A DNA stretch of 54,253 bases, filler included, from Hydrolagus affinis (lineage: Eukaryota): NCBI GenBank assembly GCA_012026655.1. It is 3 parts of 3 records of this genome, joined end to end, with 100 filler letters (N's around TTAATTAATTAA, not from the genome) between each part and the next. Parts side by side here need not be neighbours in the genome. Positions count along the whole stretch, not along the records: positions 1 to 16,999 come from JAAILG010016219.1; 2 more parts are not named here. One strand, 5' to 3'. A program made the translations under genes and the position numbers. Every line of letters starts with the position of its first letter. Position 1 is the first letter of the stretch. This document shows, piece after piece, positions 1 through 16,999 of this stretch. The notes under the pieces were generated by a model. That model was not told where the DNA came from. It saw only the letters and a list, made by a program, of their open reading frames with translations, and made no database searches.

Positions 1-249
1 GTTGTTGCTGTTGTACTTTACATTGGTGGATTTTGAAACTGTTTGTGAAATATCATGCTTTCCAACTTTAAAAAGCAGCAGAATAGTTCCCATATTTTTG
101 GTTGTGCTTTTACGGCAGTTTGGTCCTTTGCTTGTTCTTCAAATTGGCTTCTTTCTGTCCGTAAATGACTATGCGTTTCTCCTTCCTTCCCCTTTTTCAA
201 ATTATGCCTGATGACCTTCCTCTTTTTTGTGATTATTACCATTACCTAC

Positions 250-990
250 CCCTGGTTTAAAGTGGAGTTCCACCTCTGGTAAGCACTTTGAGATACTCCT
301 CTGCTTGAAGAGCAATATATAAATGTGCGTTTGTGACCTCTAGGCTCGACTATGGCAACTCCCTCCTCATAGGCCACCCCAATGCTTTTCTCCACAAACT
401 GTAGATCATCCTAAACTCTGCAGCTTGTGTTGTCTCCCACCCCAGGGAGATGACACAATCACCCCCACCATTACCCCCACCCTCACATTGGCTCCATGGG
501 CACCGCATTTCCACAGAGGATTGAAATCAAGATTCTTGTCCTCACTTTCAAGGTCCTCCATGGCCTTGACCCACCTACCTCTCTGACTCGCTGTTGCCCT
601 ATCAACCTGTCCACTCCCTCCATTCAGCCGGCTTTGGCCTGCTTCATGTGTCCCGCCCAACTTGCCTTAACATCAGAGGCCGGGCCTCAGCTTCCCTGCC
701 CCTACACTTTGGAACTCTGTCTCACAATCCCTTCACCATAATCCCTTCCTTGCCTCCTTGAAGGGCTGTCTCAATACCCTATTCTTCGACTGTGCCTTCA
801 GTCACCCTCCTACCTCTGTGTCCTCCTGCATGCCAACCATTACCCCCGACCCCCCACCCCCTTGTATCCGATCCCTGACTATTCAGCGCCTTGGGACGTG
901 CTCCCAACGTGAAAGGCAGATGTATTCTTACTATGTGAGGTGCTGTTGTACCTGTGCGAGTTTTGTGGGCGATAGCGTCAGTTTAATGCA
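250..990 (+). mobile_element. L2-type LINE 3' fragment
   Basis: Decayed ORF2 C-terminus (PQRIEIKILVLTFKVLHGLDPPT) and L2-like tail. Confidence 0.75.
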
Positions 991-1029
991 AACATTTTCC
1001 AAAAAATCTTTCAGTTGGATTAATTGAGG

Positions 1030-1830
1030 AAGGCACTTTCACATATCTGGCCTTGAAAGTGAGGACAAGGATTTTGAATTCGATCCTCTGGGGGATGGGG
1101 AGCCAATGGAACTGGGCGAGGGTGGGAGTGATGGGGTCGCGGAGTCTGGAGTGGGAGAGGACATGAGCTGCAGGGTTTTTGATGATATGCAGTTTGTGAA
1201 GGGCAGAACTGGTAAGGCCGACGGAAGGTGTTTCCATAGTCAAACCTTGATGTTATCAATGTATGGATAAGGGTTATGGCAGCCCGAGTGGTGAGGCAGT
1301 GGTGGAGTCTGTCAATGTTACACAGATGGTGGAAGGCAGTGTTGGTCATGGAGTGGATGTGTGGAGAAAGGACAGTTTAGGGTTATACAGGAAACCCTGA
1401 TTCCAGACTGGCTTCATGAGGTGGAGTGTGCAGCCGTGGATGCTGATGCTGCCAGCGCCTGAGGTGCGGAGGCGCTGACCCGAGCCAGTCACGTCAGCGA
1501 GGGGGAGCATGTCAGTAGGGGGAGCATAGAGAGTGTGAAGAGGAGGAAACTGAGGACAGAGCCCTAAGGAACGCTGCATGGGACAGTGCAGGGTTTGGAT
1601 GAAAAGCTGTTGGCAGACATGAAGTGGAGATGGTGTTAAAGATAGCACCTGAACCAGTCAAGGACAGAACCTTGAGGTGCGAGGAGAGGTGATGGAGGAG
1701 CATTGAATGGTCCACGGAATCCAAGACGGTGGATAGGTCAAGGAGGTCGAGGAGGCAGAGGGAGCCGTAGCCACAAATGACCAGGATATCATTTGTGACC
1801 TCAACAAGAGCAGAAATGGAAGAGACAGGG
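1030..1830 (-). mobile_element. L2/CR1-type LINE reverse transcriptase fragment
   Basis: ALVEVTNDIL..LLDLSTVLDSVDHSMLL (RT motif) and DPITPTLAQFHWLPIPQRIEFKIL; frameshifted. Confidence 0.8.
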
Positions 1831-2201
1831 TGATTAGAGGAGACTGGTTTATAAAACTTGCTTTTTATTGAAAGATTGCTTGAGCATATTGCATAACAGC
1901 TTCTAAAATTGTTGTAGTTAAACAACTATTTTTCATTCAAATAATTCAATCGTTACCGTTATGGATTCATCAGATTCACAGTGAATAAATACATTTTGGC
2001 AATTAAGCTTGCTTTTATGTGTACTGCAAGCAATATTTTCCAATAAATTTCCTGAGGACGTATAATGTAATAAAGTAATAAATGCAATTATGGTTGAAAC
2101 AGCTGCAAATAGAACAGCAGCCAGGATTAATATGCACATTATCCACTATGGTGGAAAACTGCATCTAATACACACCAATAGCAGTTTCTGTGACTGATGC
2201 A

Positions 2202-2345
2202 TTACTTAGATGTTGGTTCCCTGGAATCAGCGGCGGCTGCTTCTCCCTGGTTCCTCACGTGCAGTTCTTCGTACTCTGTATTCTTAACGTTAGTCAAATT
2301 TAGCATGGCATAAACCGCCGGGTCATTATCTGCTCCGTGCATAAT
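2202..2345 (-). CDS. Terminal cytoplasmic exon with two YxxL motifs
   Basis: [47 protein letters not shown]; acceptor ttttatag; candidate AATAAA at 1864-1869. Confidence 0.8.
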   Translation of the reverse strand: MMHGADNDPAVYAMLNLTNVKNTEYEELHVRNQGEAAAADSREPTSK

Positions 2346-5300
2346 CTATAAAACATAACATGATCACAACAACACATTGTATTTGTAGAGCATCTTTCAC
2401 GTCCCAGGGCGCTGAGAGATTGTTGTCTTCACTGTTCTGAAGATTGCTGTATAAGTATAAGCATCAGAAAGCCCATAAGTTGAAAACATTCGGTAAGAAA
2501 AGTGAACATTTTATCTGTTATCAATTATCAATTACATGACACCAGGTATTTGAATGATACATTTAGGAGGCAAAATTGAATGTAGGGAATGTATTTAAAA
2601 TGTTCTTATTTATTTATGATAAACAGTACTGTTTCATTACAACAAATCTGTTTTTAGATTAAACATCCGCTGAAATAATATTGGTAATTGTACCTTCTCT
2701 TGGCAATGTCTCCATCCCATCTGACTTCTGCGTGGGCCTTTGAAAGAAATTGAATAAATGCAGGATTTACTTTCGGTTATATTTTGATTTGACCAAGTGA
2801 AAAGCGTTTTGAAGATCATGAGCTGCCAAAGTCTGTTTTTCTACATATCTATATAAAGTTGTCTTCGACTCTAATGTAAACCCAGGTGATAGAGTTACAG
2901 AAATCAGACAAGCACTAATTCATAACCCATCTTGCACTCATATTACTTTCAATGCATTTCCATTCACCGTCCCTGCTCTCTGGAACTCCAATCTGGAGTC
3001 CTTCGAATTCTATCTTTCCTGCACAACCTTCGAGATCTTTGAACATATTAAATCTCGAACTTGGCTACTCCTAACCACTATTCCTTAATTCCTTCAGTTT
3101 TTCCTCAAAAGAGATTTGGTTGTTTCCTGGACTCTGGCCCTTGGTCTTTCTCCTGGGACTCTCAATAATAGAGATGGTCACAATTTCAATATAATGTGTA
3201 GCTGAATTCTAATACTGATAAACAGATACCTGGTGTGAGTCCCTATATGTGTTTGACGCCTTTCATCACTACAGTTACTTACAAATGCACATAACTCATC
3301 AGATTTTAAGCCAGTTGCAATATATTAAAATAAGATTTCAGACGCTATGTGTTAGGAAACTGAGAAATTCTAGGATACTAAGGTTCACTATGAGTAATTG
3401 TTACAGTACTGAATCTGTTGCAATAACTACACACGTAATTGTTATTGTATAACAGTAGCATCACAGAACTCCACCATCAAATTTGAAGGAAAAAAGCAAG
3501 TCACGTTTCCTCTTTACATTCATGCATCTTGAGATTTTATATCAACGTGTAATGTTTACAATTTTCTTACCATTTTCCTTTTTCAATTGGCATCGCTTCC
3601 CAATTATGATCAAAATCACCAGAAATGCGAACACAACCGCAGCACATACACCCCATGGTAAATAACAGGTTTCATTTCCACTCCCTGCAGAAATAGCACA
3701 CGCTGAGGTGAGACTGTACATTGTGTAGGGGAACGATTTATAGATTCAGTAGAATAGAAATGTTAGGCAGATCATTGATGAACTATATCTTGCAGTGATT
3801 TCAAGTAAGTATTAAGCACAGTTTCCAGTTTAAATATTATGTCTAAACTTAATCTGTGTATTTATTGAAATAAGAATAAAAATACAAGGAGACCATCACT
3901 GAAAACAGTTTGATATTGATGTATCTATCGACACCAGCTCTCGTTTACTTTGATTTTTGCTCTTGTTTTTATTACACAGATGAGGGTGACACAATACGGA
4001 AACGGAACATTGATTTTCAGAAGAACCCACACAAAATATAATCCATAAATTGTAGAATAAGACATCAGACGATAGCGACATCTGATCACATAGATGAAAC
4101 CTGCTCATTTCATATTAATAAAGGTGAGTGGGGTGGGTGGGGGTGGGGTGTGGGAGGGGCTGAGAATGATACACGATGGAATTGAAAGACATTTGGTGAT
4201 CAAGTGCCCTGAGCTAAAACTGAGGTTTTGAAAATTATACAGGTTTAGGATTTGTTGGTAATGTCCATAACCATTAAATAGATAATATCGGTTAGGTTTA
4301 ACAAAATCTTTGATGATTCACATCAAACGTTTCACATTCAATCGGTTTAATGTATATTATTACCAACATGCACAATCTCCTCAGCACCATTCTCAACACA
4401 TTTGTCTCCTGACAGCAATGGCATCGCTTCCTATCCTTGCGGGTCTCATGGGAGAGTCACATTCCATCCCTTAAGTCACAGGCAAGTGCTGCTGAACATT
4501 GACTGTTCCTCAGGGCTCTAACCTCGGCCTCTGCCTCTTCGCTATCTATATGCTCCCACTTGGCGACATCATCCGTCGACATAGTAATAATCCTTGTATT
4601 TGATATAGTGCTTTTCACATCTTCTAGACGTCTCAAAGCACTTCACAGAATATACTGTAAAGTGGATTGACTGTATATTTGTGGGCGAAACGCAGCAGCC
4701 AATTGTGCACAGCAGTGTCCCACAAACAGTCGTGGATTGAAATGACCAATTTTATTCTTGTTTTTTGGGGGACAGATTATTATTAGGCATGTGGAGTAAG
4801 GAAACTTGCCTTGTTTCACCCTGACCTGCCTGGATTTGAAACACAAGTCTCACGCTTGTAAGGCGAGTGTTCTAACCACTGAGCTACTGGACTCCACAGA
4901 GGGTCAACAACAAGATTTCACATCCACATGTATAACAATGAAACCCAAATCTTCCATCTTACCCCACAACAACATGAAGCTTTGACTTGATTACTGTCAA
5001 GCATCAAATCCTTCAATGAGCTCTGACTTTGTTCAGCTGAAAAATAATAATCTCTGCATTTTATATCATGATTTATATATTGAATGCAATGATTAATATT
5101 CTCATTATTGTCCTTTCAAATCGCTTCAGATTATTCACTTTATGAATCAATGCAACTAAACATCCCTATGAGAATTCGATTAACAACAGCTGACTTTTTA
5201 AAATTCACCTGCGTTAGGTTTAGGGTACAGTGATTATTGTTATGATTATTATTATTATCTCATTATTTCATCTCAAATCGCTTCAGACAATTCACCGAAT

Positions 5301-7587
5301 GGCGCTATACAAATGTAACTTTGTTGTTGATGTTGTTTACGAATCTATGCAGCTAAACATCCCTATGAGAATTGAAATAACTACAGTTGATTTTTAAAAC
5401 TCGTTCAGAATCTTACCTGTATAAGGTTTGAGGATGGTGTAGATGGCAATAGCTGAAGTCTTGAGGCTGACGTGAGACATCAGACAGGTATAAACAGACG
5501 CTATCTGGACAGACTGTGTGTCTTCAATAGAGCTAGAGACCTGATAGAGTTCCCCCGAGTTCTGCTTTTCTATAGCTACTGTCTCTTCCACCTTTATTCC
5601 CGATGTTGGTGTAATTTCGTTTCCATCTTTATACCATGTGAGGGTGAAATCCTTTGGGTAAAACGCAGTAGTTTCACACACAAGAGTCCGATGCTCAGTT
5701 GAATTCCTGGAGAAAATCCTCAGTGGAGTTGGGGGAACTGTAGAACAGATAATGGAGGAAAACCGTATTCATTTTTTTTATCAATCGGCGGGACAAACTT
5801 TATTTTGATTCATTTCTTTGCAACGTCCTGATTCCTGAGTGCAAATGCAGGTTTCTGTAGATTCACAAATATCCCCCTCACAGCAGGAGAAGCTTCCTCC
5901 TGCTTTAATTACTGTGTGTTTTTTAATCAATTAATGTTGATTCATAATCTTTATCTTTCATATTATTACTTAGGTGTTTGTTCAGCAGGTGAAATTGTTC
6001 GCTGCAAACTCTCGATCAGAGTAAATAAAGGATTCCTGACAGGTGTGTGCACACTGTTATTCTGGCTCAATTGGGTAGCATTCTCGCCTTTGAGTTAGAA
6101 AGAGATGGGATCAAGCTCCACGTCCAGACTTGGAATTCACATAGTCTATGTTGAAATGCCTGCTGTAATGCAGTTCTTAGGGTGCATAAAATGAAAGGAT
6201 TGTATTATCTCAGCCTTAAGAGATTTTGATCAGGTAAACAGGGAAACAGTAAGTCTGGAACAAGAGACCATAAGTTAGAATCATTACCATGATAGAAAGT
6301 TTAATTTTGATTTTACTGAGAGGCTCCTGGGTCCCAAACAAAATAAAGGCTGAAGCAGAATCCATAACAGCTATTTAACTGAATTTTACAGTCATATTTC
6401 CTTTGTCTTCTACATGGATTTTAGATTACGAATGCGAATAACATGGATCAATTCTGTATGTAACCTGTGTAACATTAGAATTTATAAAACTATTTGTTAA
6501 TTTGTGCTGAATTATATTATTTTGTGTTTTAGTTTGGCAGGGGTTACTTTTGATGTAATTTTCAAATACAGGTAGACCCCATTTAAAGTTGTTTTGGTCA
6601 ACGTTGTTTCACTATTACGTTTCGGATACAGAGGGAACACACATCCATTTAACGTTGTGATGTTCGCTATTACATCGTTCTCCAGCGGGTGCTGCATTGG
6701 TGAGCGTAAGATGGCGTTAGGGCCTGGCCGTCAACAGAGTGACGGGGAGGCTGGGAGTGAGCCAGCAGTGAGTGAGTGAGCCATACAGGCAGTCATGGAA
6801 TGAGTGAGTGAGCCGGGCAGGCAGTGAGACAGCGAGTGAGTAAGCCAGGCAGGCAGTCGGGGAGTGGGTATAATGTTTTTTTTAGAATTTTTTTAACGAA
6901 AAATGTCCAAGAACCTAACTCGAGTTTATACATTAATATAATGTGAAAAATGTAATCACTTAACGTCGTTTCGATTAAAGCCGCGCGTTTCAAGAACAAT
7001 CCTACGACATTAAGCGAGGAAAATCTTTACTTTCGCTGTTCGTTCACTCACCGCACACAGTTAAGCGTGATCCAGGTCCTGTTCCAATTACCGATCCCTG
7101 ACGGATCACTGAGCAGCGATAGACTCCAGAGTCCTGGAAACTCACATTCAGGAACTGGAAGAAGCCGCTTTGTTTGCCTTTCACACCAAATATTTTTCTG
7201 ATATCCGCCTGTGTGTCCAAGTAGCCGTCCTCACCCTCCTTCTCCCACTTCACCTCCTCTCCTGAATCTTGATGAGATAATGGAAAGATACAGTGGAAAG
7301 TGACGTTTGTCCCTCTGATGACAGTCACACGTTCGGGGATTTGAATCACTTTCTCTGAAGAATCCATAGCAACTGTCAGAAAATAAAGTCAAACACTGAT
7401 TTCTCAGACAATATGCCGTGGACAAAAGTAAGCGAGTAAATAGAGTAAAAAACGTATGTATAAATGATAAATGGCACAAGGAAACAAGCTGGCACATATT
7501 TCGTAGAAGAACTGAGTTGTAAAATAATCATATACCTGTTGAAATAATATGTAAGACAGCGAGGAACAGAAAGATGACACTCCCCAT
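2202..7587 (-). CDS. Ig-superfamily type I receptor, leader-V(J)-C1-TM-cytoplasmic, NKp30(NCR3)/SIRP-like, 331 aa
   Basis: Six GT-AG exons with matching phases: 7536-7587 (leader [17 protein letters not shown]), 7052-7372 (V), 5417-5737 (C1), 3571-3684 (TM), 2694-2737 (44 nt), 2202-2345 (last, TAA). Total 996 nt with no internal stop. Confidence 0.85.
3571..3684 (-). CDS. Stalk and uncharged TM exon
   Basis: [38 protein letters not shown]; acceptor tttctgcag, donor gtaag. Confidence 0.85.
4585..4897 (-). mobile_element. tRNA-headed SINE, full length (DeuSINE-like core, L2-like tail)
   Basis: A box TAGCTCAGTGG, B box, core GCTGTGCACAATTGGCTGC, tail ending in (ATT)n. Confidence 0.85.
5417..5737 (-). 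CDS. C1-set Ig exon
   Basis: [21 protein letters not shown]...[10 protein letters not shown], the C1-set signature; phase 1-1, 321 nt. Confidence 0.9.
6569..7025. mobile_element. TcMar-Tigger-like non-autonomous DNA transposon (MITE)
   Basis: TA followed by CAGGTAGACCCC..AACGTTGTTTC; far end GTCGTTTCGATTAAAG..CGACATTAAGCGAGG resembles MER82/MER47-type ends as recalled. Confidence 0.55.
7052..7372 (-). CDS. V-set Ig exon with germline J-like end
   Basis: VTFHC...VKW...DSGVYRC...[11 protein letters not shown], phase 1-1; the GTGxG-x-RLxV end resembles NKp30 as recalled (VGTGNGTRLVV). Confidence 0.9.
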
Positions 7588-8047
7588 GTTTGACGGTGGC
7601 TCTGATGAGCTGTAACACACGAACGTGCAGTATTTGATATAGAGTCGGCAGCTGTGACACTGACTTCCTGTTTCATTGAGTTCGTGAAATGTCGCTGTTG
7701 TGGTTGATGTGATTTAAAATCCACTTTTACAGTAAAACTGAAAATAATATGTTTTCCTGTTAATAGCAGAGAAAGGGTTAAACAAATATCAAAACATAAA
7801 CTCACAGTGTCCAGCATCACTATTGAGTCCTTGGTGCTTTCTCCAACCAGAAATATTGTTTTAAGCATCAACTCTCCTTGGAGTGTCAGATACAAGCCAA
7901 TCTGGTGGAATGTTTCTCCTGATAGTTCTCTCTGTCCCCTATTGATAGAAATTAACCTTTCCCTCTAAAGTGTTCGCCCACCCTCAAACATAACAAATTA
8001 TCGTTACCCTTCGTATCCAAAGTTGTAGAGATAGAATAATCATACAC

Positions 8048-8099
8048 CTGTTGAAATAATATGTAAGACAGACAGGTACAAAAGGATGACACTCTCCAT
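8048..8099 (-). CDS. Second (duplicated) leader exon
   Basis: MESVILLYLSVLHIIST+G, 52 nt, phase 1, donor gtgtat; near copy of 7536-7587. Confidence 0.7.
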
Positions 8100-8133
8100 G
8101 TCTGATTCTGGCTCTGATGGGCTGTAACATGTG

Positions 8134-8448
8134 AATAATAATAATCTTTGCATTTGCTATAGCGCTTTTCACATCTTATCGACATCTCAAAGTGTTTCAC
8201 AGAATATAACGTAAAGTGAACTGCCTATACCTATGGGCGAAACGCGGGAGCCAACCGCGCACAGCAGTGACCCACAAACAGCCGTGGATTGAAATGACCA
8301 ATTTTAATATTGTGTTTTTTTTGATGGATTATTATTCGGCGTGTGGAGTACGGAAACTTACCCAAGGCTTTGCCCTGATCTGCTTGGATTCGAACACAGG
8401 TCACGTGCTTTCAAGGCAAGTGCTCTAAACACTGAGCTATAGGAGCGC
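8134..8448 (-). mobile_element. tRNA-headed SINE
   Basis: Same family as 4585-4897. Confidence 0.8.
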
Positions 8449-11089
8449 CATGGTCTGATAATGCAGTATACCATTGCCTTGGTGTGTGCGCTTAAATTCC
8501 TGACATGAGGCTTTATCCTGTTAACTCTGCAAGCCAAAGCCCTAGCCTTTAGGATGATCCTAGCTGGACAACAAGCGGGAAAGCTCGCAGGACAGCAATA
8601 TCAATGGCAAACTATGTGATTTTAGCTGGTTAGACTCCAGCAATACCCAGAGACAGAGCTCTAAAATTCATTATAAATGGACGCATGTCTTATAACCCTT
8701 TTGCACCTCCTAATTTAGACTTATTATTCACCTTTTCCCTTCCGTATCTTATCCTCCAGAGCTACAAAGTCACAATGTGCTCTCCTGCTATTCTCAACCA
8801 TAAAACCACAATCTTTCGAGGCCAATGGAGACTAAACTAACGCTAGAAAGTAATTACGGAACTTGTCGCTTCAGTTAGTAATTTGGGAATGTGTGCAATA
8901 GGGGGAATGCTTGCAGCAACTGACTATTATGTGTGTGTATGCATGTGCACGAACGCATAACTACCTATATGATCATTTTAGTAACCATATCCTCATAAAA
9001 TTGCTCATAATTACTTCCTCATAAAGCTAAATGTGTTTTCTAATTTTATTGCAAAGCATCTATCATAACACTAATCTCTGAAAAGAAAGGAAATTGGTCA
9101 TTTCAATCCAAGACTGTTGGTGGGACACTATAGTGTGCAATTGCCTGCCTGCCTGCCTGCCTGCCCACCTGCCCGTCCGCCCTCCAAGACCACAATGCCT
9201 CTGCCTGCTTGTCCTCCAAATGTTCTACTGCTTTCAAAATAGTCCACTGTTGCGACTTGACGACTTCTCTTCCCTCATCCATCTCCTTGGGCTGCCTGGC
9301 CACCTGCCGTGTATCTAAGAACTGTATTCTTGTCCCCCTTACTTTTTCAACTCCATCCTCTTTCACTTGGTGATACTATCCACAGACAAGCGATTACGTT
9401 TCATATTGATGTGAATGAAAGGCAACTCAACCTCTACTGTCGATTCGAGATCTACTGGTGCAATATCCAATTCCGTGTCAAGACCTTGATGATCCCAGAT
9501 TTTCTGTAAATTACTATTGATGAATCCCATCCTCCTTGTCTTATGCAAATATTTCCTTTTTTCTAGAATTTACTGTAAAGTGAACTGACTGTATAAGTGT
9601 GGGAAACACACAGCTACCAATTGTGCACACCCAGGTGTCCCCACAAATAGGAATGGAGGTCACAATGTGCTAGCCTCAACCATAAAACCACAATTTTTCA
9701 AGGCCAATTGAAACTAAACTAAGGTTAGGAAGTATTTACGGAACTTGTCACTTCAGTTACTAGTTTTGGAATGTGTGCAGCAACTGTGTGTGTGTGTGCA
9801 CGTACACATAACTACCTACAGGATCATTTTAGGAACCATATCCATTACTTCCTCATAAAGCTAATATGTTTTCTAATTTTATTGCAAAGCATTTATCGTA
9901 ACACTAATCCCTGAAAAGAAAGTAAATTGTTCATTTCAATCCACGCCTGTTAGTGGGACATTATAGTGTGCAATTGATTGCTGTGCTTCATCTGCATATG
10001 TACAATCAATTCACCTTGCCTACAATATACAAAGTGCTTTGAGACATCTAGAAGACATGATATGCGCTAAATCAAATAATAGAATAATAATCATTATTAA
10101 AAATCATAAGTACATTGCTCAGGTCAGACCGCACCTTGAGTAATGCATAACAATGTGGTCACCTTGATGGTAAACATTAATGTCCTGTGCTCGATATATA
10201 ATCTGAGAGTGCAAGACTCTTGTAATTTAATTATCCTGTGACATTTACAAACATAGCAGGATGATTGAGGTTTTAACGCTTATTTATTTCATGTTAGGTA
10301 TATTGTTATACTATTAGATATATTGTAAGTAGATACACAAAATGTTGAATGCAAAGCTTCAACCATTTCACTGCATTTGACGAATTGCAACACATCTTGT
10401 TGCCTCCCCTCCTCTCTGTTAGTGGTTAATATCCTCTCCCCCACAACAAGCCCCAGTTCAGACGAAAGTATAGAATTAAATGGTTGTTCGGTTGCCTTCC
10501 TCGGTCTGTAGTCTTTGACTATGGTATTGAATAAGTAGGGATTTGATGAGAAACTGTCAAGTACAAATAGTTAAAGGAACATAAAGGGACAGAAGCAGTG
10601 AAAATCATATTTCCAATTGATATTCTGCCATCCACCAACATGAAAATATGTTACAGACCTGATTAGATTAATTCAACAAGAATTCCTACTTAAAGTACTA
10701 TTGATTAAAACATGTTGGGATTTGTTTGACACAAAGTCACAGGCCTGACTCGGATGGATTACAAGAAAGGTAAATTGTGGTTTACAACTAACAACTTAAT
10801 TCTGTCAAGGGGAATAAATAGGTTCGTAATTCTGGAGGAATCATGTTCAGTTCATAATCCAATTCAATTTAAGCGCTGTCTTGGTGTGGGTTGAGATTTG
10901 TCCGGTGTCCTGGCGAATGATAATCATGATAAATTGGTGACACACTTTATATGGTTATAGCAAATAGTCATTCCAAATACAATGATTCGCAGCCGTGAAG
11001 CATTTTAAAACGTTTGGAATTATAGGCTCCACAATGACAATTACTAAATTGGGATATTGATCACCCAACTGATTTGGTGATAAACTTAC

Positions 11090-12250
11090 CCGATCTTCCA
11101 GATTGCCCGATCGAGTCAGGTTTCCCTTTGATCCTAAATGTGAATAAAATTTCCTGAATTAAATATTTACTCAATTTTAATACTAAAATAATGTAATTAT
11201 CCTACATTTCGGGATGAGTGAAATACAAATATTCGCCTGGATTATTTAGTCTCCCCCTGAAACTCCATGTCACTCATACTTTCCGAAATCCTTAACATTG
11301 TAGGAATTTTTTCCTTTGAATATTTTGAATCCCAAACTTGGCGATGACTAACCACTATTCCTTAATTTTTTAGTTTTTCCTCTTAAGCAGCTTGTAAGTT
11401 TCCTGCACGCTGGGCCTTCGTTTTTCTCCTGGGACTCTCAATAATAAAAACATATTTTTAATGTCACAATTTCAATGTAGTATTTCGCTGAATTCCATTA
11501 CAACAACAAAATAACATTTGTATATTGCCATTCACGTCAGGAGGATGTTTACTGATAAACACACATCTGGCGCTAGTCCCTGCATTTGTTTGACACCATT
11601 CATCAGTACAGTTACTAACAAATGCACACAATTCATCGTATCATAAGGCAGTTGCAATACATTAAGTCAGATTTCTGACATTGAAGGTGGTTAAATGAGA
11701 AATTCTGGGATACTAACATTCACCATGTGAAATTGTTACAGTACTGAATCTGTTGCAATAACTACAAGTAATTTATAAGAGCATAAGAACATAAGAATTA
11801 GGAGCAGGAGTATGCCATTCGGCCCTTCGAACCTGCTCCGCCATTCAATAAGATCATGGCTGATCTTCTGACCTAACTCTGATTACCTGCCCTATCCCCA
11901 TATCCCCTAATCCCTCTATTTTTCAAAAATCTATCAGTTTCAGCCTTGAAAATGTTCAAAGACTGAGCATCTACAGCCTTCTGGGGTAGTGAATTCCATA
12001 AATTTACCAAGGGTGAATGTGGGTTGTGAAATGTGGCTGTTGTGATTGATGTGATTTGAAACCCACCTTTACAGTGAAATTGTGAAAATAATAATTCTTC
12101 CCATTAATAGCAGGGAAAGGTTAAACATGTATCTAAACATAAAATAATAGCGTTCAGCATTACTATTATGTTGGTGGTGCTTTCTCCATATTGAATTATT
12201 GTTTTAAGCATCAACTTTGCTTTGAGTCAGTAGTGTCAGAAAGAAGCCAT
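11090..12250 (-). pseudogene. Internally deleted relic of the VJ-C1 receptor
   Basis: 44-nt phase 1-0 exon at 11090-11133; about 11250-11770 is similar to intron 2960-3430; about 12030-12250 is similar to upstream region 7690-7900; no leader, V, C1 or TM in between. Confidence 0.6.
11780..12010 (-). mobile_element. CR1-type LINE 3' tail
   Basis: ATAAGAACATAAGAATTAGGAGCAGGAGT..GCCATTCGGCCCTTCGA, the reverse of a typical shark CR1 3' end. Confidence 0.7.
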
Positions 12251-12378
12251 CTCCACATCAGGCCACAGACATTTTTTATAAACCCACCAACTCCCACAGC
12301 TACCTTGACTACACCTCATCCCATAATTCAAAGTTGTTGTTTTATTTTACAATGAAGAGAAGAACCAGATGACAAAGA

Positions 12379-12600
12379 TTGAAGGAGGTGGGGAGAGAAG
12401 ATAGACTCAAAGCAAGTGTACAGAAATGCTACTTCAGTGAGCGAATAGTAAACTTATGGAACAGGCTTCAAAAGGAGATGATGAAAGCAGAAACTGTTTG
12501 TTTCAAGAAGTTAGATAGATTTTTCGCTAGAAAACACTTCATTGGGGTAAAGGGTGCAGTTAGGGACTAGTGTCAAGGGACTGCTAGATTGGTTGAAGGT
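12379..12600 (+). mobile_element. CR1-type LINE ORF2 tail fragment (similar pieces at about 15510-15700, 17630-17740, 31085-31365, 38500-38690)
   Basis: YFSERIVNLWNRL..FKKLDRF motif. Confidence 0.65.
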
Positions 12601-14242
12601 AATGTAGGTGTACCTTGGTCTTCTTTTTTGTAAGAATTTTTTATGATGTTAAGTTGTTGTTGTTGCTGATAACATAGATAAATCGCAATATATACAGCAT
12701 CTCAAAATCTATCTGAACAAAAAGATTGGAAAATCGTTTAATAGATTTCTGCATTTTCTGAATATTGCTTTCCCTTAGAAAATAGACATTCAATAAATGA
12801 CCAAATACCACATCGACTTTCCTTGAACATTTTATTTATTGCAATTCAAAATGAGGACTCAAAGCTGTTATGTTTAATTATCATGTACAGTAATGTACAA
12901 GCAACTTCATTTGAGATTTTAGGTGAATGGTATGACAGATATCACATAAAAATAGACTAAAATGTTTATTGATTGCAGTTTCATAGCCTCCACCCTTACA
13001 AAACATCAATAGCTGTATTTTAAAAGAATAAAATATATCATTTATGGGACTTGGTGATTTTTGAACATTTTTAAACAGCTGAAAAATGCAAATTGTTTAG
13101 GATGTTCTAGTGAAATAAAGCAAAAGGAATAAAGTTTGGAGAGTAAAAGGCTTCTGGGTCCTTTTGTGCAGAAATTTCTGTGTCTACATAAATTTTTAAA
13201 AACCATCAACACAATTTTCCATAGGGGTCAGAAAAATCAAAAGATGATCTACAATTGATGTTCAACTGGACTCCATGATTTGTCCCAAAATATTATTTAT
13301 AAAACAATAAAGTGGTGGCTTTGGATAATATAGTTTTGTAATTGTCAGTTTATTGGTGCCAAATTGTCCAAGCTGATGTGTAATTTTTTTTAAGAAAGTC
13401 TCTGAAGAAAGTCTGGGAAACTACAACAGCAACAAGAAAGTTGTACAGTGCCTTTCACGTTGGGAGGACATCCCAAGAAGCTGTGATATATAACTGCTAA
13501 TATATAATGAGTGAAAACAAATAAGATGTGGCTAATATTCCAGTTATTTTCCCACTCCTAAATAGTATAAATCAAAATTGATCAAATATGTTTGATATAG
13601 TATATCAGTTCATAATATAGAATCTTCTGTTTCTTCCAGTCACTGCATTTCCACCAGCAAAATTCAATCGCCTGTGATAATTTTTCACTTCATCTGTAAC
13701 TGAACAAGATATTATTTATACTGATTGTTACGTTCCACGCAAACAAGTTAATATTTCAATCTGAAATATTTACAACGACACTGTAAACATAATACATTTT
13801 AGTTTAATTGTAAACAGCGACTAAAGATATTCAGACAACACCATTGACATTGATATCCTGCCGATCACTCTGGAAGGGCATCTGAAAGCGCTTGGCACTG
13901 TTGGTTGGCCACTGGAGCTGGAAGCCGAGCCATCACATATGACTGTCTGATTTTATTTGTCTCTATCTAATATGATATAAATTTATTCTCAAACTGTAAA
14001 TATTTAAAGATTATCTTCAAGAATGGATGTAGAGCTTATGAATAGGGACACTAATGCTAACATTTATTATGACAACCCAGTAACAGATATGGAAGTCATT
14101 ACACTAATAATGTATATTATTGACTGTTGTTCCAGACGCCTGGAGGTTTGGAGGAGATATCTTTATATCCACTGATTATTAGAGAATCCTCCAATACAAC
14201 AAATGTTAATTCCCACAATCTAAACAGTCTGGTCCCAGTTAC

Positions 14243-15457
14243 CAGCGGTTTCCTGTTCATTGATAATTTTATGGGCTACGCTATCAATATAAATAATTGT
14301 CAATGAAACCACAATATTATTTTGAAACAAAGAATGCTTCCTTACCTTTCAAGCTGTGAGATTTTAACATGGTCAACAATGAAGATGGTCAACACTATCA
14401 CTACCAAGAAACAAGATATAAACCGTAAAATCATCATATTCTCCGACATTCCACCATAACCTAGAAAACAAACATCGAAATTTAAAATGTTTACATGAAA
14501 ATTTGCTGGATATCTAGGCTGTATTGGGAAAATACATACTTTCTTAATTAATTTCTATTGGAAGCTACAATGAGATGGAAATGATCAACTGTGAATTTAT
14601 GTGATTGAAAACAACAGAGAATTATTGTGAACATCAATGCACAGAGAGTTTGTTAATGATGTTATAGAGACAGAGTTATATATTATATGATAGCAGTTCC
14701 CCAGAGACGGTGTGCTTAACTTCAAATGTGCCAGAGAGAATTACTGTTTTTAAGAGCAGCAATTGTTGCTGTAAAGGAGAAGAAGCGAAAGATTTGCTCC
14801 AACAAGGCGTCAGAAAATGAAATGGTTTGAGGAAGGAATCTTATTTGTGTTTTATTTGTGAACATGTAAAGTCGAATTACTGATTTGAAAACGAATTGCA
14901 GGTGGAGCGCTCAGGACTATTGCACTTTAGGCAGGTTAACAAATAACAAAACATACATATTGAAGATGAGAAATTTAATAACAAAACAAGAAGTTACTCA
15001 GATTTGAAATATTCTGCCTTTCAAAGACTGAATATTTATATATATATCTTATATATATATGGCATTTGCAGTGGTAAACATTCTGCGTATGACTGTAAAT
15101 TTGTTGCTTAAATAAATGCAGATACAATTTCCGGTAACAAAGTGTTTAACAATAAAAGAAAGTGAGATAACTAGGCATCCTACCATCCAATCCTGTGTTG
15201 AATTTAGAAACTGTGTAGCTCGGAACAGCGGGAAGCTGGTGTCTGATGGCAGACAGGAATAAACAGCTCCGTTTTGTACAGTCTGTGTCTCTTCTATTTA
15301 GTCCGAAACTTCGTAAAATCCGTTTGAATTTTTTACTTTATTGAAATCTGTCCCCGATTTAACTGCCATCGTTATTCCCAATGAGGCCGACATCTCTCAA
15401 TATCAGTTTAGGGCACTAAACCTTTGGAGATAGACCAGACTGGGGGTAGGTTTGGGG
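14243..15457 (-). pseudogene. Paralogous C1-TM-cytoplasmic pseudogene with Arg in the TM
   Basis: Decayed C1 exon 15184-15457 (KVKNSNGFYEVSD*IEETQTVQNGAVYSC, with stops, shorter than 321 nt); open TM exon 14346-14460 (GYGGMSENMMILRFISCFLVVIVLTIFIVDHVKISQLE); 38-nt exon 14243-14280 (SVAHKIINEQETA). Confidence 0.7.
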
Positions 15458-16999
15458 CTAAAACAGTGCAGGATCCGTCCTTTTACAAGGTGAATGAAAC
15501 ATTCTTAAATTGTGCCTCTCAGAAGCCGTGTGGAATCTTTCTCTTCTCATGGAATATTGTGGAATTCCCTCAAATAAATAGCCTTTGATGCACATCCAAG
15601 TGGGATATTTGAAATGGAGATGGATAATAGGTTATGGGAATATGAAAAGTGGCGGAGAAATTGATTGAACTTCTGCCATCATTCTGGAGCAACAATCAGC
15701 TGCATTTATAAGTGTTTCCAGTCGGAGAGTGTCCCGAAGAAAACAGTGGAGATTACACTAAAATTAGACGGATGGAGTGATTTCTATATTGTTATTCTAA
15801 TAAAATATTTTGAAGGTCTTAATAATCCCTGTAATGTGAATTTGACTAACAACTGCGTTCCTACTTATTGCAAGAGATTCTGATTAATAATCATCCTAAC
15901 AGCAGCCAAATTTTCCACACAAAATGTACAGTACCATAAATAGTCATGAAGTGAATAACCAACTTTACCCGGGGGTTTCATTAGCCAGAACAAAGGAGGA
16001 AGAATCTTACTTCACTTTTCGAATAGTACCGCGACATCATTAATGTACACCTGAACATGCCATAAGGACCTCAGTTTAATGTCCCATCCAAATAGCGGGA
16101 AGCCACAGACTGCTCCCCTAGCATTACACTGGATTGTCAGTGACTTGGGACAATCTCGATACATGTGTTCAGAATAGATTAGTATATTACTAGACAGGGT
16201 AAACATTCTCGGTACGGAGGGATATAAATAGTTGAAAGCAATGTTAACTTTAGACATTCATGAAAATTCTTTTAATTTAAGTATTAAGCAAAATAACCAG
16301 TGTGAATATTACGTCTAGTCTCAATCTGTGAATATTATTGTGATCAGAATTAACAACAAAACAAAATTACACCTGCCGTCAGGAGGACGTACCAAGGCAC
16401 TGGACCCGAAATTAAAATTACAATGAACTCAGAACGTAAAACAGCTTGATAATATGTCATTTAAGGCAGATGTAGCTGATGATATGTGTTTGAGTTTATT
16501 TTTTAATCATTGCTCTTGACTTTATTACTCAGGCGAGGGTGACACACAGAATACGACAATGGACCATTGCTTTTCAGAGGAACCCTCACAAAATACAATC
16601 CATAAATTGTAGAGTAAGATGGCTTTACCTATTGACATCTGATCACAGTGATGAAACACGCTGATTTGTTTTTAGTAAAAGGGGGGAAATATGATGGAAT
16701 GAGAAGACATTTGATGCTGAAGTGTCCTGAGGCGTCCCGAGGTTTTAAAAATTATGCGGGTTTAGGATTCCACCACTTATCGGTTAGGTTTAACAAAATA
16801 TTTGATGATTCGCTTAAAATGTATCACCTTCAATTCAAATTGGATACTGTAGTTTATCACCATCGTGTACCACGCCCTTCTCACTAATCTCAACACATTT
16901 GTCTCCCATCAACTCTGGCATCGCTTCCTATCCTTCCTATATGCAGGTCTCCTGGGAGAGCAAGTCACATTCCATCCCTCAAGTCATCGGCAGGAGCTG

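Follow-up and report, generated by a model that had tools for sequence, protein, structure and literature searches.

A probable SIRP-like V-C1 receptor of Hydrolagus affinis and the likely exon fusion in its cytoplasmic tail

We analysed a stretch of 54,253 nucleotides of DNA from the cartilaginous fish Hydrolagus affinis (assembly GCA_012026655.1), here called the window, in which positions 1 to 16,999 come from record JAAILG010016219.1. A gene of six exons lies on the minus strand at 7587-2202. It is probably an intact-looking, SIRP-like receptor gene with one variable (V) and one constant (C1) domain, which belongs to a paired receptor family of cartilaginous fish, is of inhibitory-type origin and has a cytoplasmic tail fused by a deletion. 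The two tyrosine motifs of the tail stand at a distance resembling that in the tyrosine-based activation motif of immunoreceptors (ITAM). Comparison with relatives indicates that this spacing is a secondary product of the exon-fusing deletion in an inhibitory-type tail, not an ancestral design. The family is already public in the form of uncharacterised predictions. The exon-fusion origin of the spacing is the new element, and apart from this small peculiarity the gene is a usual member of its family, not a new kind of receptor.

The layout of a V domain with a joining (J) strand, a C1 domain and a transmembrane (TM) segment has been proposed for the precursor of the immunoglobulin (Ig) and T-cell receptor (TCR) genes, and non-rearranging cases from cartilaginous fish interest comparative immunologists. 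Known non-rearranging VJ or VJ-C1 genes include NKp30, SIRP, PRARP, UrIg and UrIg2 (PMC10751288, PMC12227049, PMC11599192). The original prediction had pointed to this architecture in the gene described here. The gene is not a singular, ancestor-like find but one of dozens in cartilaginous fish, which are already present as automatic RefSeq/UniProt predictions, and it has a collinear counterpart in Callorhinchus milii. The gene is now placed in a large, fast-evolving SIRP-like paired family that is named inconsistently in public annotation.

Gene model and Ig domains

All introns of the gene have GT-AG boundaries, and the spliced coding sequence of 996 nt translates into 331 amino acids with no internal stop. 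Exon 1 (7536-7587) contains the start codon and the signal peptide, comprising 17 codons plus 1 nt with the donor GTATAT, and its leader shares 76% amino acid identity with that of the C. milii relative P0002. Exon 2 (7052-7372) encodes the V-set domain together with a germline-joined, J-like G strand, and exon 3 (5417-5737) encodes the C1-set domain. Both Ig exons are 321 nt long and have phase 1-1, the usual pattern for Ig-superfamily genes. Exon 4 (3571-3684), which is 65% identical to the TM exon of P0002, encodes the stalk SGNETC, the TM segment and the basic stop-transfer sequence KRCQLKKEN. The TM segment (3661-3599) is 21 residues long and, as had been proposed, carries no charged residue. 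Two cytoplasmic exons complete the gene: the short exon 5 (2694-2737), which is 53% identical to the homologous exon of P0030/P0172, and the fused terminal exon 6 (2202-2345), which ends with the stop codon TAA. The 3' untranslated region (1845-2201) shares 78.5% nucleotide identity with that of the C. milii P0172 gene and contains AATAAA at 1869-1864, about 335 nt past the stop codon. All the features described earlier for an intact VJ-C1-TM receptor were found in place, with open frames and GT-AG sites; judged from the sequence, "intact" denotes open frames and good splice sites, not demonstrated function. A second leader exon is located at 8048-8099 on the same strand, about 500 bp upstream of the used leader. 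It shows 87% DNA identity and has an ATG, a GT donor and an open frame encoding MESVILLYLSVLHIIST. It may serve as an alternative first exon or be what remains of a local duplication.

The similarity searches were run with single exons and the nearest stored relatives, not with the full spliced protein. Exon 2 matches the Pfam V-set family (2e-10, 41.3 bits versus a cut-off of 26), and its AlphaFold model, built on the family alignment, contains nine strands with a mean predicted local distance difference test score (pLDDT) of 89.5. C27, W42 and C86 are invariant across the V domains of the family. The J-like strand GPGSRLTV (7056-7079) is located inside the V exon, and its pattern G-x-G-[ST]-x-L-x-V is found throughout the family alignment. 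No heptamer or nonamer resembling a recombination signal was found in or beside the V exon. An encoded J-like strand and a non-rearranging gene, both proposed earlier, are thereby borne out. The V exon ends in a cysteine that is shared by 8 of the 41 V domains in the family alignment, each belonging to the closest subfamily, and a further cysteine is present in the stalk, so both of the predicted extra cysteines exist.

The structural neighbours of the V model found by Foldseek are the V domains of the shark antigen receptor IgNAR, VHH/VH, Ig/TCR V domains, CD79b, CD8-beta and SIRP-alpha V (TM-score 0.74). NKp30 also appears, with TM-scores of 0.72-0.79 and 21-23% identity, at ranks 7-28 in Swiss-Prot and rank 42 in the PDB, and no B7 V domain is present among the top 50 structural matches. 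A phmmer search of the PDB with the V exon retrieved neither the NKp30 nor the SIRP V domain at E<0.01; its weak matches were LRIG3, PD-L1 (E about 1e-3) and pIgR. The match in the ESM Atlas is restricted to generic V-set clusters (among them antigen receptor fragments, PD-1, CD22-like, TIGIT and CD200). The V-family profile searched against the PDB was swamped by multi-domain Ig proteins and did not rank SIRP, NKp30 or B7. The V domain is of VJ type and is not specifically NKp30-like. The NKp30-like V domain of the original prediction is hence not upheld, as phmmer gives no NKp30 match in the PDB at E<0.01 and NKp30 is one of many V-set neighbours by Foldseek.

Exon 3 matches the Pfam C1-set family (2.6e-10, 41 bits versus a cut-off of 21) and carries the signature YTCLMSH, with Met at the position usually occupied by Val in Y-x-C-x-V-x-H. 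In the PDB, phmmer with this exon retrieved IgM Cmu2 (6.5e-14, summed over domains), UrIg2 (3e-11) and SIRP-gamma/SIRP-alpha (6e-9 to 8e-9). The AlphaFold model of the C1 domain, also based on the family alignment, has a pLDDT of 86.1, and its Foldseek neighbours include the IgD C domain, MHC class II beta2, HFE, TAPBPR and the C domain of B7-H6 (rank 28). The C1-family profile placed UrIg2 second-best in the PDB, in a list swamped by multi-domain Ig proteins in which SIRP, NKp30 and B7 were not ranked. In addition, the B-C strand region of the window C1 domain is close to the aligned stretch of the second SIRP-alpha domain. The Pfam score above the cut-off, together with neighbours among Ig/MHC constant domains, the second SIRP domain and TAPBPR, confirms the claim of a true C1 domain. 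Between the V and TM exons, introns included, no second C1 or Ig-like exon was found.

Origin of the fused tail

Exon 6 corresponds to two separate exons of the C. milii P0172 gene (locus L002). Its 5' part matches the first ITIM exon (exon A), which is named after the immunoreceptor tyrosine-based inhibitory motif (ITIM), and its 3' part matches the last exon up to the stop. In blastn, window 2309-3000, which includes exon 5, aligns with L002 17057-16336, and window 1819-2292 aligns with L002 18219-17753, leaving about 650-700 bp of the P0172 gene without counterpart in the window. In P0172 this stretch spans the intron together with the exon halves on either side of it: the 3' half of the first ITIM exon, where TVYTQ stands, and the 5' half of the last exon, where the canonical ITIM LTYASL stands. 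The pairwise alignments to both exons place the approximate junction at 2290-2296; immediately 3' of it, the stretch GTTAAGAATAC, common to both parental exons, forms a microhomology. At its end, exon 6 matches the P0172 terminal exon over the final 30 codons, where P0172 reads KNTQYAELHVRNHGGAAAAICREPKSK / HVRNHGGAAAAICREPKSK before the stop.

The fused exon brings together two motifs. AVYAML (2301-2318) is a degenerate ITIM with Ala at -2 and is homologous to VAYDSL / VAYVTL of relatives. TEYEEL (2262-2279) is a terminal tyrosine motif resembling an immunoreceptor tyrosine-based switch motif (ITSM) or a Src-SH2-type ligand, and is homologous to NTQYAEL / NTEYAEI / NSEYSEV at the tail ends of relatives; phosphorylated YEEL/I is a good type of ligand for Src-family SH2 domains. 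The two tyrosines are 13 residues apart, whereas the most frequent spacing in the family is 23 (36 cases in 91 tails), and none of the other members among these 91 tails combines a spacing of 13 with an ITIM-like motif followed by an ITSM-like one. As long tails of two exons are found in holocephalan and elasmobranch members alike, the short fused exon represents the derived condition. Moreover, a contig from a DNA run that differs by 1.9% from the window spans the fused exon, which shows that the fusion is not an assembly artefact; frame, both tyrosines and spacing (YAMI ... TEYEEL) all survive the eight substitutions that the contig carries in this exon.

The family units (V/L)xYAxL(D/N)L ... 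(T/S)EYAE(I/V/L), with tyrosines about 23 residues apart, resemble the ITIM-ITSM tails of PD-1, CD31, CEACAM1 and SIRP-alpha. The window tail keeps the terminal TEYEEL, but its first motif has Ala at -2 and its spacing of 13 overlaps the ITAM-like range. YAML-(9 residues)-YEEL misses the canonical ITAM, YxxL/I-x6-8-YxxL/I, by one residue and fits only the looser range of 6-12. The ambiguous tail of the original prediction therefore stands in that the motifs are neither cleanly ITAM nor cleanly ITIM/ITSM, while the ITAM-like spacing itself is explained by the exon-fusing deletion.

These comparisons suggest the following course of events. The locus would encode a type I membrane protein, a germline-joined VJ-C1 immunoreceptor of inhibitory-type descent, in which a deletion of about 650-700 bp presumably brought the 5' part of the first ITIM exon and the 3' end of the terminal exon together in one reading frame. 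The canonical ITIM (LTYAxL) would have been lost in this way along with TVYAQ, leaving the degenerate ITIM AVYAML with its tyrosine 13 residues before that of the terminal TEYEEL. The V domain would bind a ligand, and the extra cysteines may produce disulfide-linked dimers. After phosphorylation by Src-family kinases, the tail most likely would still recruit SH2 phosphatases or adaptors through TEYEEL, and the expected outcome is a weakened or switch-type inhibitory signal, not genuine ITAM signalling. An inhibitory lineage that has lost its strong ITIM is indicated by the history of the tail, by the uncharged TM segment and by the separate activating-type partners, and residual inhibitory or switch-type signalling via TEYEEL appears most likely.

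Family relationships and alternative explanations

The V exon, searched exhaustively with HMMER, retrieved 154 representative proteins at E<=1e-3, 53 of them at E<=1e-10. The best single-V-domain matches, members from C. milii, are 69-71% identical (E 1e-40), and all named single-V-domain relatives that were looked up come from cartilaginous fish (Callorhinchus, Heterodontus, Mustelus, Heptranchias, Scyliorhinus, Chiloscyllium, Hemiscyllium, Hemitrygon, Hypanus, Mobula and others). Outside this group, the full-length family profile found only one bird TAPBPL-like protein (2.7e-9) in a search limited by its word index. The automatic RefSeq names of the members conflict with each other: the commonest is [quoted passage not shown], and others are SIRP-alpha-like, SIRP-beta-1-like, tapasin-related-like, Ig lambda-like, CD276 homolog, NCR3LG1-like and MHC II beta-like. 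No description of the family was found in the literature surveyed, which did not include the key shark NKp30/B7H6 and UrIg papers, where the family may be named.

The family is defined by a layout of leader, V(J), one C1 domain, a TM segment with a Gly/Cys-rich start and a tail, by strong sequence similarity between members and by clustered genes. In C. milii, a single 18-Mb scaffold carries the members, over an interval of at least 15.22-15.74 Mb. Most members possess an uncharged TM segment and a long tail of repeated units, (V/L)xYAxL(D/N)L ... TVYAQ ... LTYAxL ... (T/S)EYAE(I/V/L). Activating-type members (for example P0166, P0171, P0032, P0048, P0058, P0070, P0093 and P0116) have an Arg near the start of the TM segment, which ends with ..IVDH (Arg/Asp), and a tail of 8-35 residues. 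The activating P0171 and the inhibitory P0172 of C. milii are 95% identical over 233 ectodomain residues, with identical leader and V domain. Such near-identical ectodomains on opposite signalling modules are a hallmark of paired immunoreceptors (SIRP-alpha/beta, KIR and PILR), and the paired forms argue for a receptor rather than a B7-like ligand. That the two forms are splice variants was considered and rejected, as neither the P0172 gene nor the introns of the window gene contain an activating-type TM exon. P0171 and P0172 are therefore separate genes or variants of the assembly or gene model.

The window protein itself has no entry in the protein collection searched. Over window 3039-7692, exons and introns alike are collinear with the C. 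milii LOC103185896 locus (L001), at 73-81% nucleotide identity, and the upstream intergenic DNA is collinear as well (window 12823-15035 versus L001 2469-52). In a maximum-likelihood tree of 66 ectodomain-containing rows, the window gene groups with LOC103185896, A0A4W3H538 and A0A4W3H256 with an approximate likelihood-ratio (SH-aLRT) support of 100, and the C. milii trio forms its own clade at 97. The grouping and the collinearity together identify the window as DNA of a holocephalan other than C. milii and its gene as a co-ortholog of the C. milii trio, with amino acid identities to LOC103185896 of 70% for V and 63% for C1. LOC103185896 (XP_042196354.1) and its copies (XP_042196356.1, A0A4W3H538 and A0A4W3H256) have the same leader, V-terminal Cys and TM type as the window gene. 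The tail of LOC103185896, however, carries three ITIM-type motifs over three tail exons, whereas the window tail resembles that of the P0172 gene, shortened by the exon fusion. As to the possibility raised earlier, a plain ortholog of a characterised receptor, an ortholog exists, but as a predicted and uncharacterised protein. The RefSeq model XP_042196354.1 joins V straight to TM and skips an intact, in-frame C1 exon at L001 11137-11463 (63% amino acid identity); it is probably a public model missing an exon, or else a C1-skipping isoform.

Among known receptors, we regard the SIRPs as probably the closest kind, by a small margin in the sequence comparisons. P0001, the closest V-C1 relative among the stored sequences, is 68% identical to the window gene over the ectodomain. 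Its best PDB match is human SIRP-alpha (E 2.3e-10), in a single collinear alignment that extends from V strands F-G over the J-like strand and on into the first C1 domain. Its further PDB matches are SIRP-gamma (4e-8), TAPBPR (1e-7), Ig light chains (1e-6) and B7-H6 (5e-6). SIRPs resemble the window gene in that a C1-set domain comes directly after a VJ-type V domain at the N-terminus, and resemble the cartilaginous-fish family in having inhibitory forms with ITIM tails and activating forms with charged TM segments and short tails. They differ in having two C1 domains where the window gene has one, and the window tail keeps only a degenerate ITIM. The similarity between SIRPs and the family is weak (E about 1e-10), and all family members seen come from cartilaginous fish. 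In addition, the TM segment of SIRP-beta contains a single Lys, whereas the activating forms of cartilaginous fish have Arg and Asp instead. UrIg and UrIg2 likewise join V to C1 in the germline of cartilaginous fish. They are secreted proteins with several C domains, conserved and low-copy, and are reported only in elasmobranchs (PMC12227049), whereas the window gene is membrane-bound, has one C1 domain, and is fast-evolving, multicopy and also found in holocephalans.

Several observations weigh against a SIRP-like receptor of inhibitory origin that still signals. The tail comparison was made with a paralogue, the P0172 gene, and not with a strict ortholog, and the tail of LOC103185896 differs. 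AVYAML, with Ala at -2, fails the ITIM consensus (S/I/V/L)-x-Y-x-x-(I/V/L), where relatives have VAYDSL / VAYVTL / LTYAAL. Set against the ITSM T-x-Y-x-x-(V/I), TEYEEL has Thr at -2 and Leu at +3 (relatives TEYAEI, TEYAEV and TQYAEL). Recruitment of phosphatases is proposed by analogy with relatives, through motifs that fail the strict consensus. Moreover, the placement beside the SIRPs is based on weak pairwise scores, in which SIRP-alpha (43.6 bits with P0001) ties with IgM Cmu2. In three single-cell polyA runs, the only RNA examined, exon depth is near zero and there are no splice joints for the predicted gene model; the reads fall on an intronic high-copy repeat. The ratio of non-synonymous to synonymous substitution (dN/dS) against LOC103185896 is 0.52 for V and 0.84 for C1, and reaches 0.91 for V against a neighbouring copy. 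Exons, with 81-82% nucleotide identity, are barely more conserved than introns with 73-81%. Such weak constraint fits either fast birth-and-death evolution of immune receptors or relaxed constraint.

A recently disabled or drifting member, with frames still open but unexpressed or free of selection and a tail deletion amounting to loss of function, would account for these ratios, for the near-equality of exons and introns and for the absence of reads, and would suit the adjoining paralogue pseudo-exons and the loss of the canonical ITIM. We nevertheless consider it rather unlikely, as the frame and canonical splice sites are kept in 6 of 6 exons, the structural Cys/Trp and the C1 signature residues are retained, and the second, diverged copy preserves the tail reading frame despite 8 nucleotide changes. 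High dN/dS is also normal for paired immune receptors, and the RNA runs represent a single sample that may carry a different species label. The fused tail could alternatively work as a functional ITAM-like module (YAML-x9-YEEL) that recruits Syk-family kinases and makes a self-signalling activating receptor from an inhibitory lineage. Both motifs are of the form YxxL, acidic residues precede both tyrosines, the diverged DNA copy keeps both tyrosines and their spacing, the spacer of 9 exceeds the canonical 6-8 but falls short of the 12 in the Fc-gamma-RIIA ITAM, and the adjoining activating-type paralogue is a pseudogene in the window genome. The spacing is nonetheless outside the canonical ITAM, a deletion within ITIM/ITSM units explains the arrangement, the TM segment and the remaining protein are of inhibitory type, and the sampled relatives lack the same order and spacing, which together make the ITAM module distinctly unlikely. 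Should the fused tail signal, it would illustrate how one deletion can re-tune or even invert the signalling of an immunoreceptor; otherwise the gene is a further birth-and-death product of such clusters.

Other explanations concern the identity of the family. The gene might be a cartilaginous-fish NKp30 (NCR3) that still has a C1 domain: the V domain is of VJ type, as in the non-rearranging NKp30, NCR3 is among the Swiss-Prot Foldseek matches given above, and the G strand GTG-x-G-S/T-RL-x-V may resemble that of NKp30. However, there is no NKp30 sequence match at E<0.01, and CD79b, CD8-beta, IgNAR V, Ig/TCR V and SIRP-alpha V match equally well or better. NKp30 has no C1 domain, a charged TM segment (Arg, pairing with CD3-zeta/FcR-gamma), no tyrosine motifs and a single copy, all unlike the window gene with its C1 domain, uncharged TM and two tyrosine motifs, and the dozens of family copies contrast with shark NCR3, which published work treats as an MHC-linked VJ gene (PMC12227049, PMC10751288). 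We accordingly give this identity next to no weight. A B7-family or B7-H6-like ligand with a V-C1-TM layout and tail, rather than a receptor, is suggested by the NCR3LG1-like and CD276 homolog names of some members, by the weak PD-L1 V matches, and by B7-H6 appearing both with P0001 and with the C1 model. It is highly improbable in view of the J-like G-x-G-S/T-x-L-x-V strand, the antigen-receptor-type V neighbours without B7 V domains in the top 50, the pairing with charged-TM forms that is a receptor hallmark, and the higher score of SIRP-alpha than B7-H6 for P0001. It also seems very unlikely to us that the family represents a membrane VJ-C1 lineage that branched near the SIRP/UrIg/antigen-receptor stem, a surviving receptor-type relative of the precursor that predates the recombination-activating (RAG) system, and that the deletion made a working ITAM-like unit from ITIM/ITSM, converting one gene from inhibitory to activating.

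Flanking sequence

The DNA upstream of the gene holds remnants of further family members. The TM exon of an activating-type paralogue, with an Arg in the TM segment, the ending ..IVDH and an open frame, is located at 14345-14455 on the minus strand. This exon is syntenic with L001 770-862, and an activating-type TM exon thus lies 7-9 kb upstream of the gene in the window and in C. milii alike, which indicates that the order of activating-type gene then window gene is conserved. A C1 pseudo-exon of the same upstream paralogue, with in-frame stops, is found at 15232-15506 (minus strand). Moreover, window 10481-11768 matches the TM-to-tail intron region of LOC103185896 (L001 12893-14517), window 16471-16999 matches its C1-to-TM intron (L001 11865-12372), and an exon-like piece at 11134-11090 (GSKGNLTRSGNLEDR) resembles its first cytoplasmic exon. 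The intron-like matches and the exon-like piece together suggest that the window holds scrambled pieces of at least one further upstream family member.

Scans of the flanks for tRNA, Rfam and Pfam features found nothing. A high-copy repeat resembling a short interspersed nuclear element (SINE) is present at window 4581-4901 and 8134-8444, with fragments at 9091-9149, 9565-9657 and 9914-10099. Many copies of the repeat, at 77-90% identity, occur in the C. milii loci; it reaches enormous depth in the DNA contigs and the single-cell RNA, and ARAGORN and Rfam called no tRNA on it. Window 1-1800 is richer in G+C (0.48-0.52) than the rest (about 0.36-0.40) and strongly strand-skewed, and both of its strands carry long open frames. 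It resembles a degraded retroelement, but a Pfam search with two of its open reading frames gave no match. In intron 2 of the gene, imperfect GAGTGAGTGAGCC(A/G)..CAGGCAGTC repeats occupy window 6740-6870.

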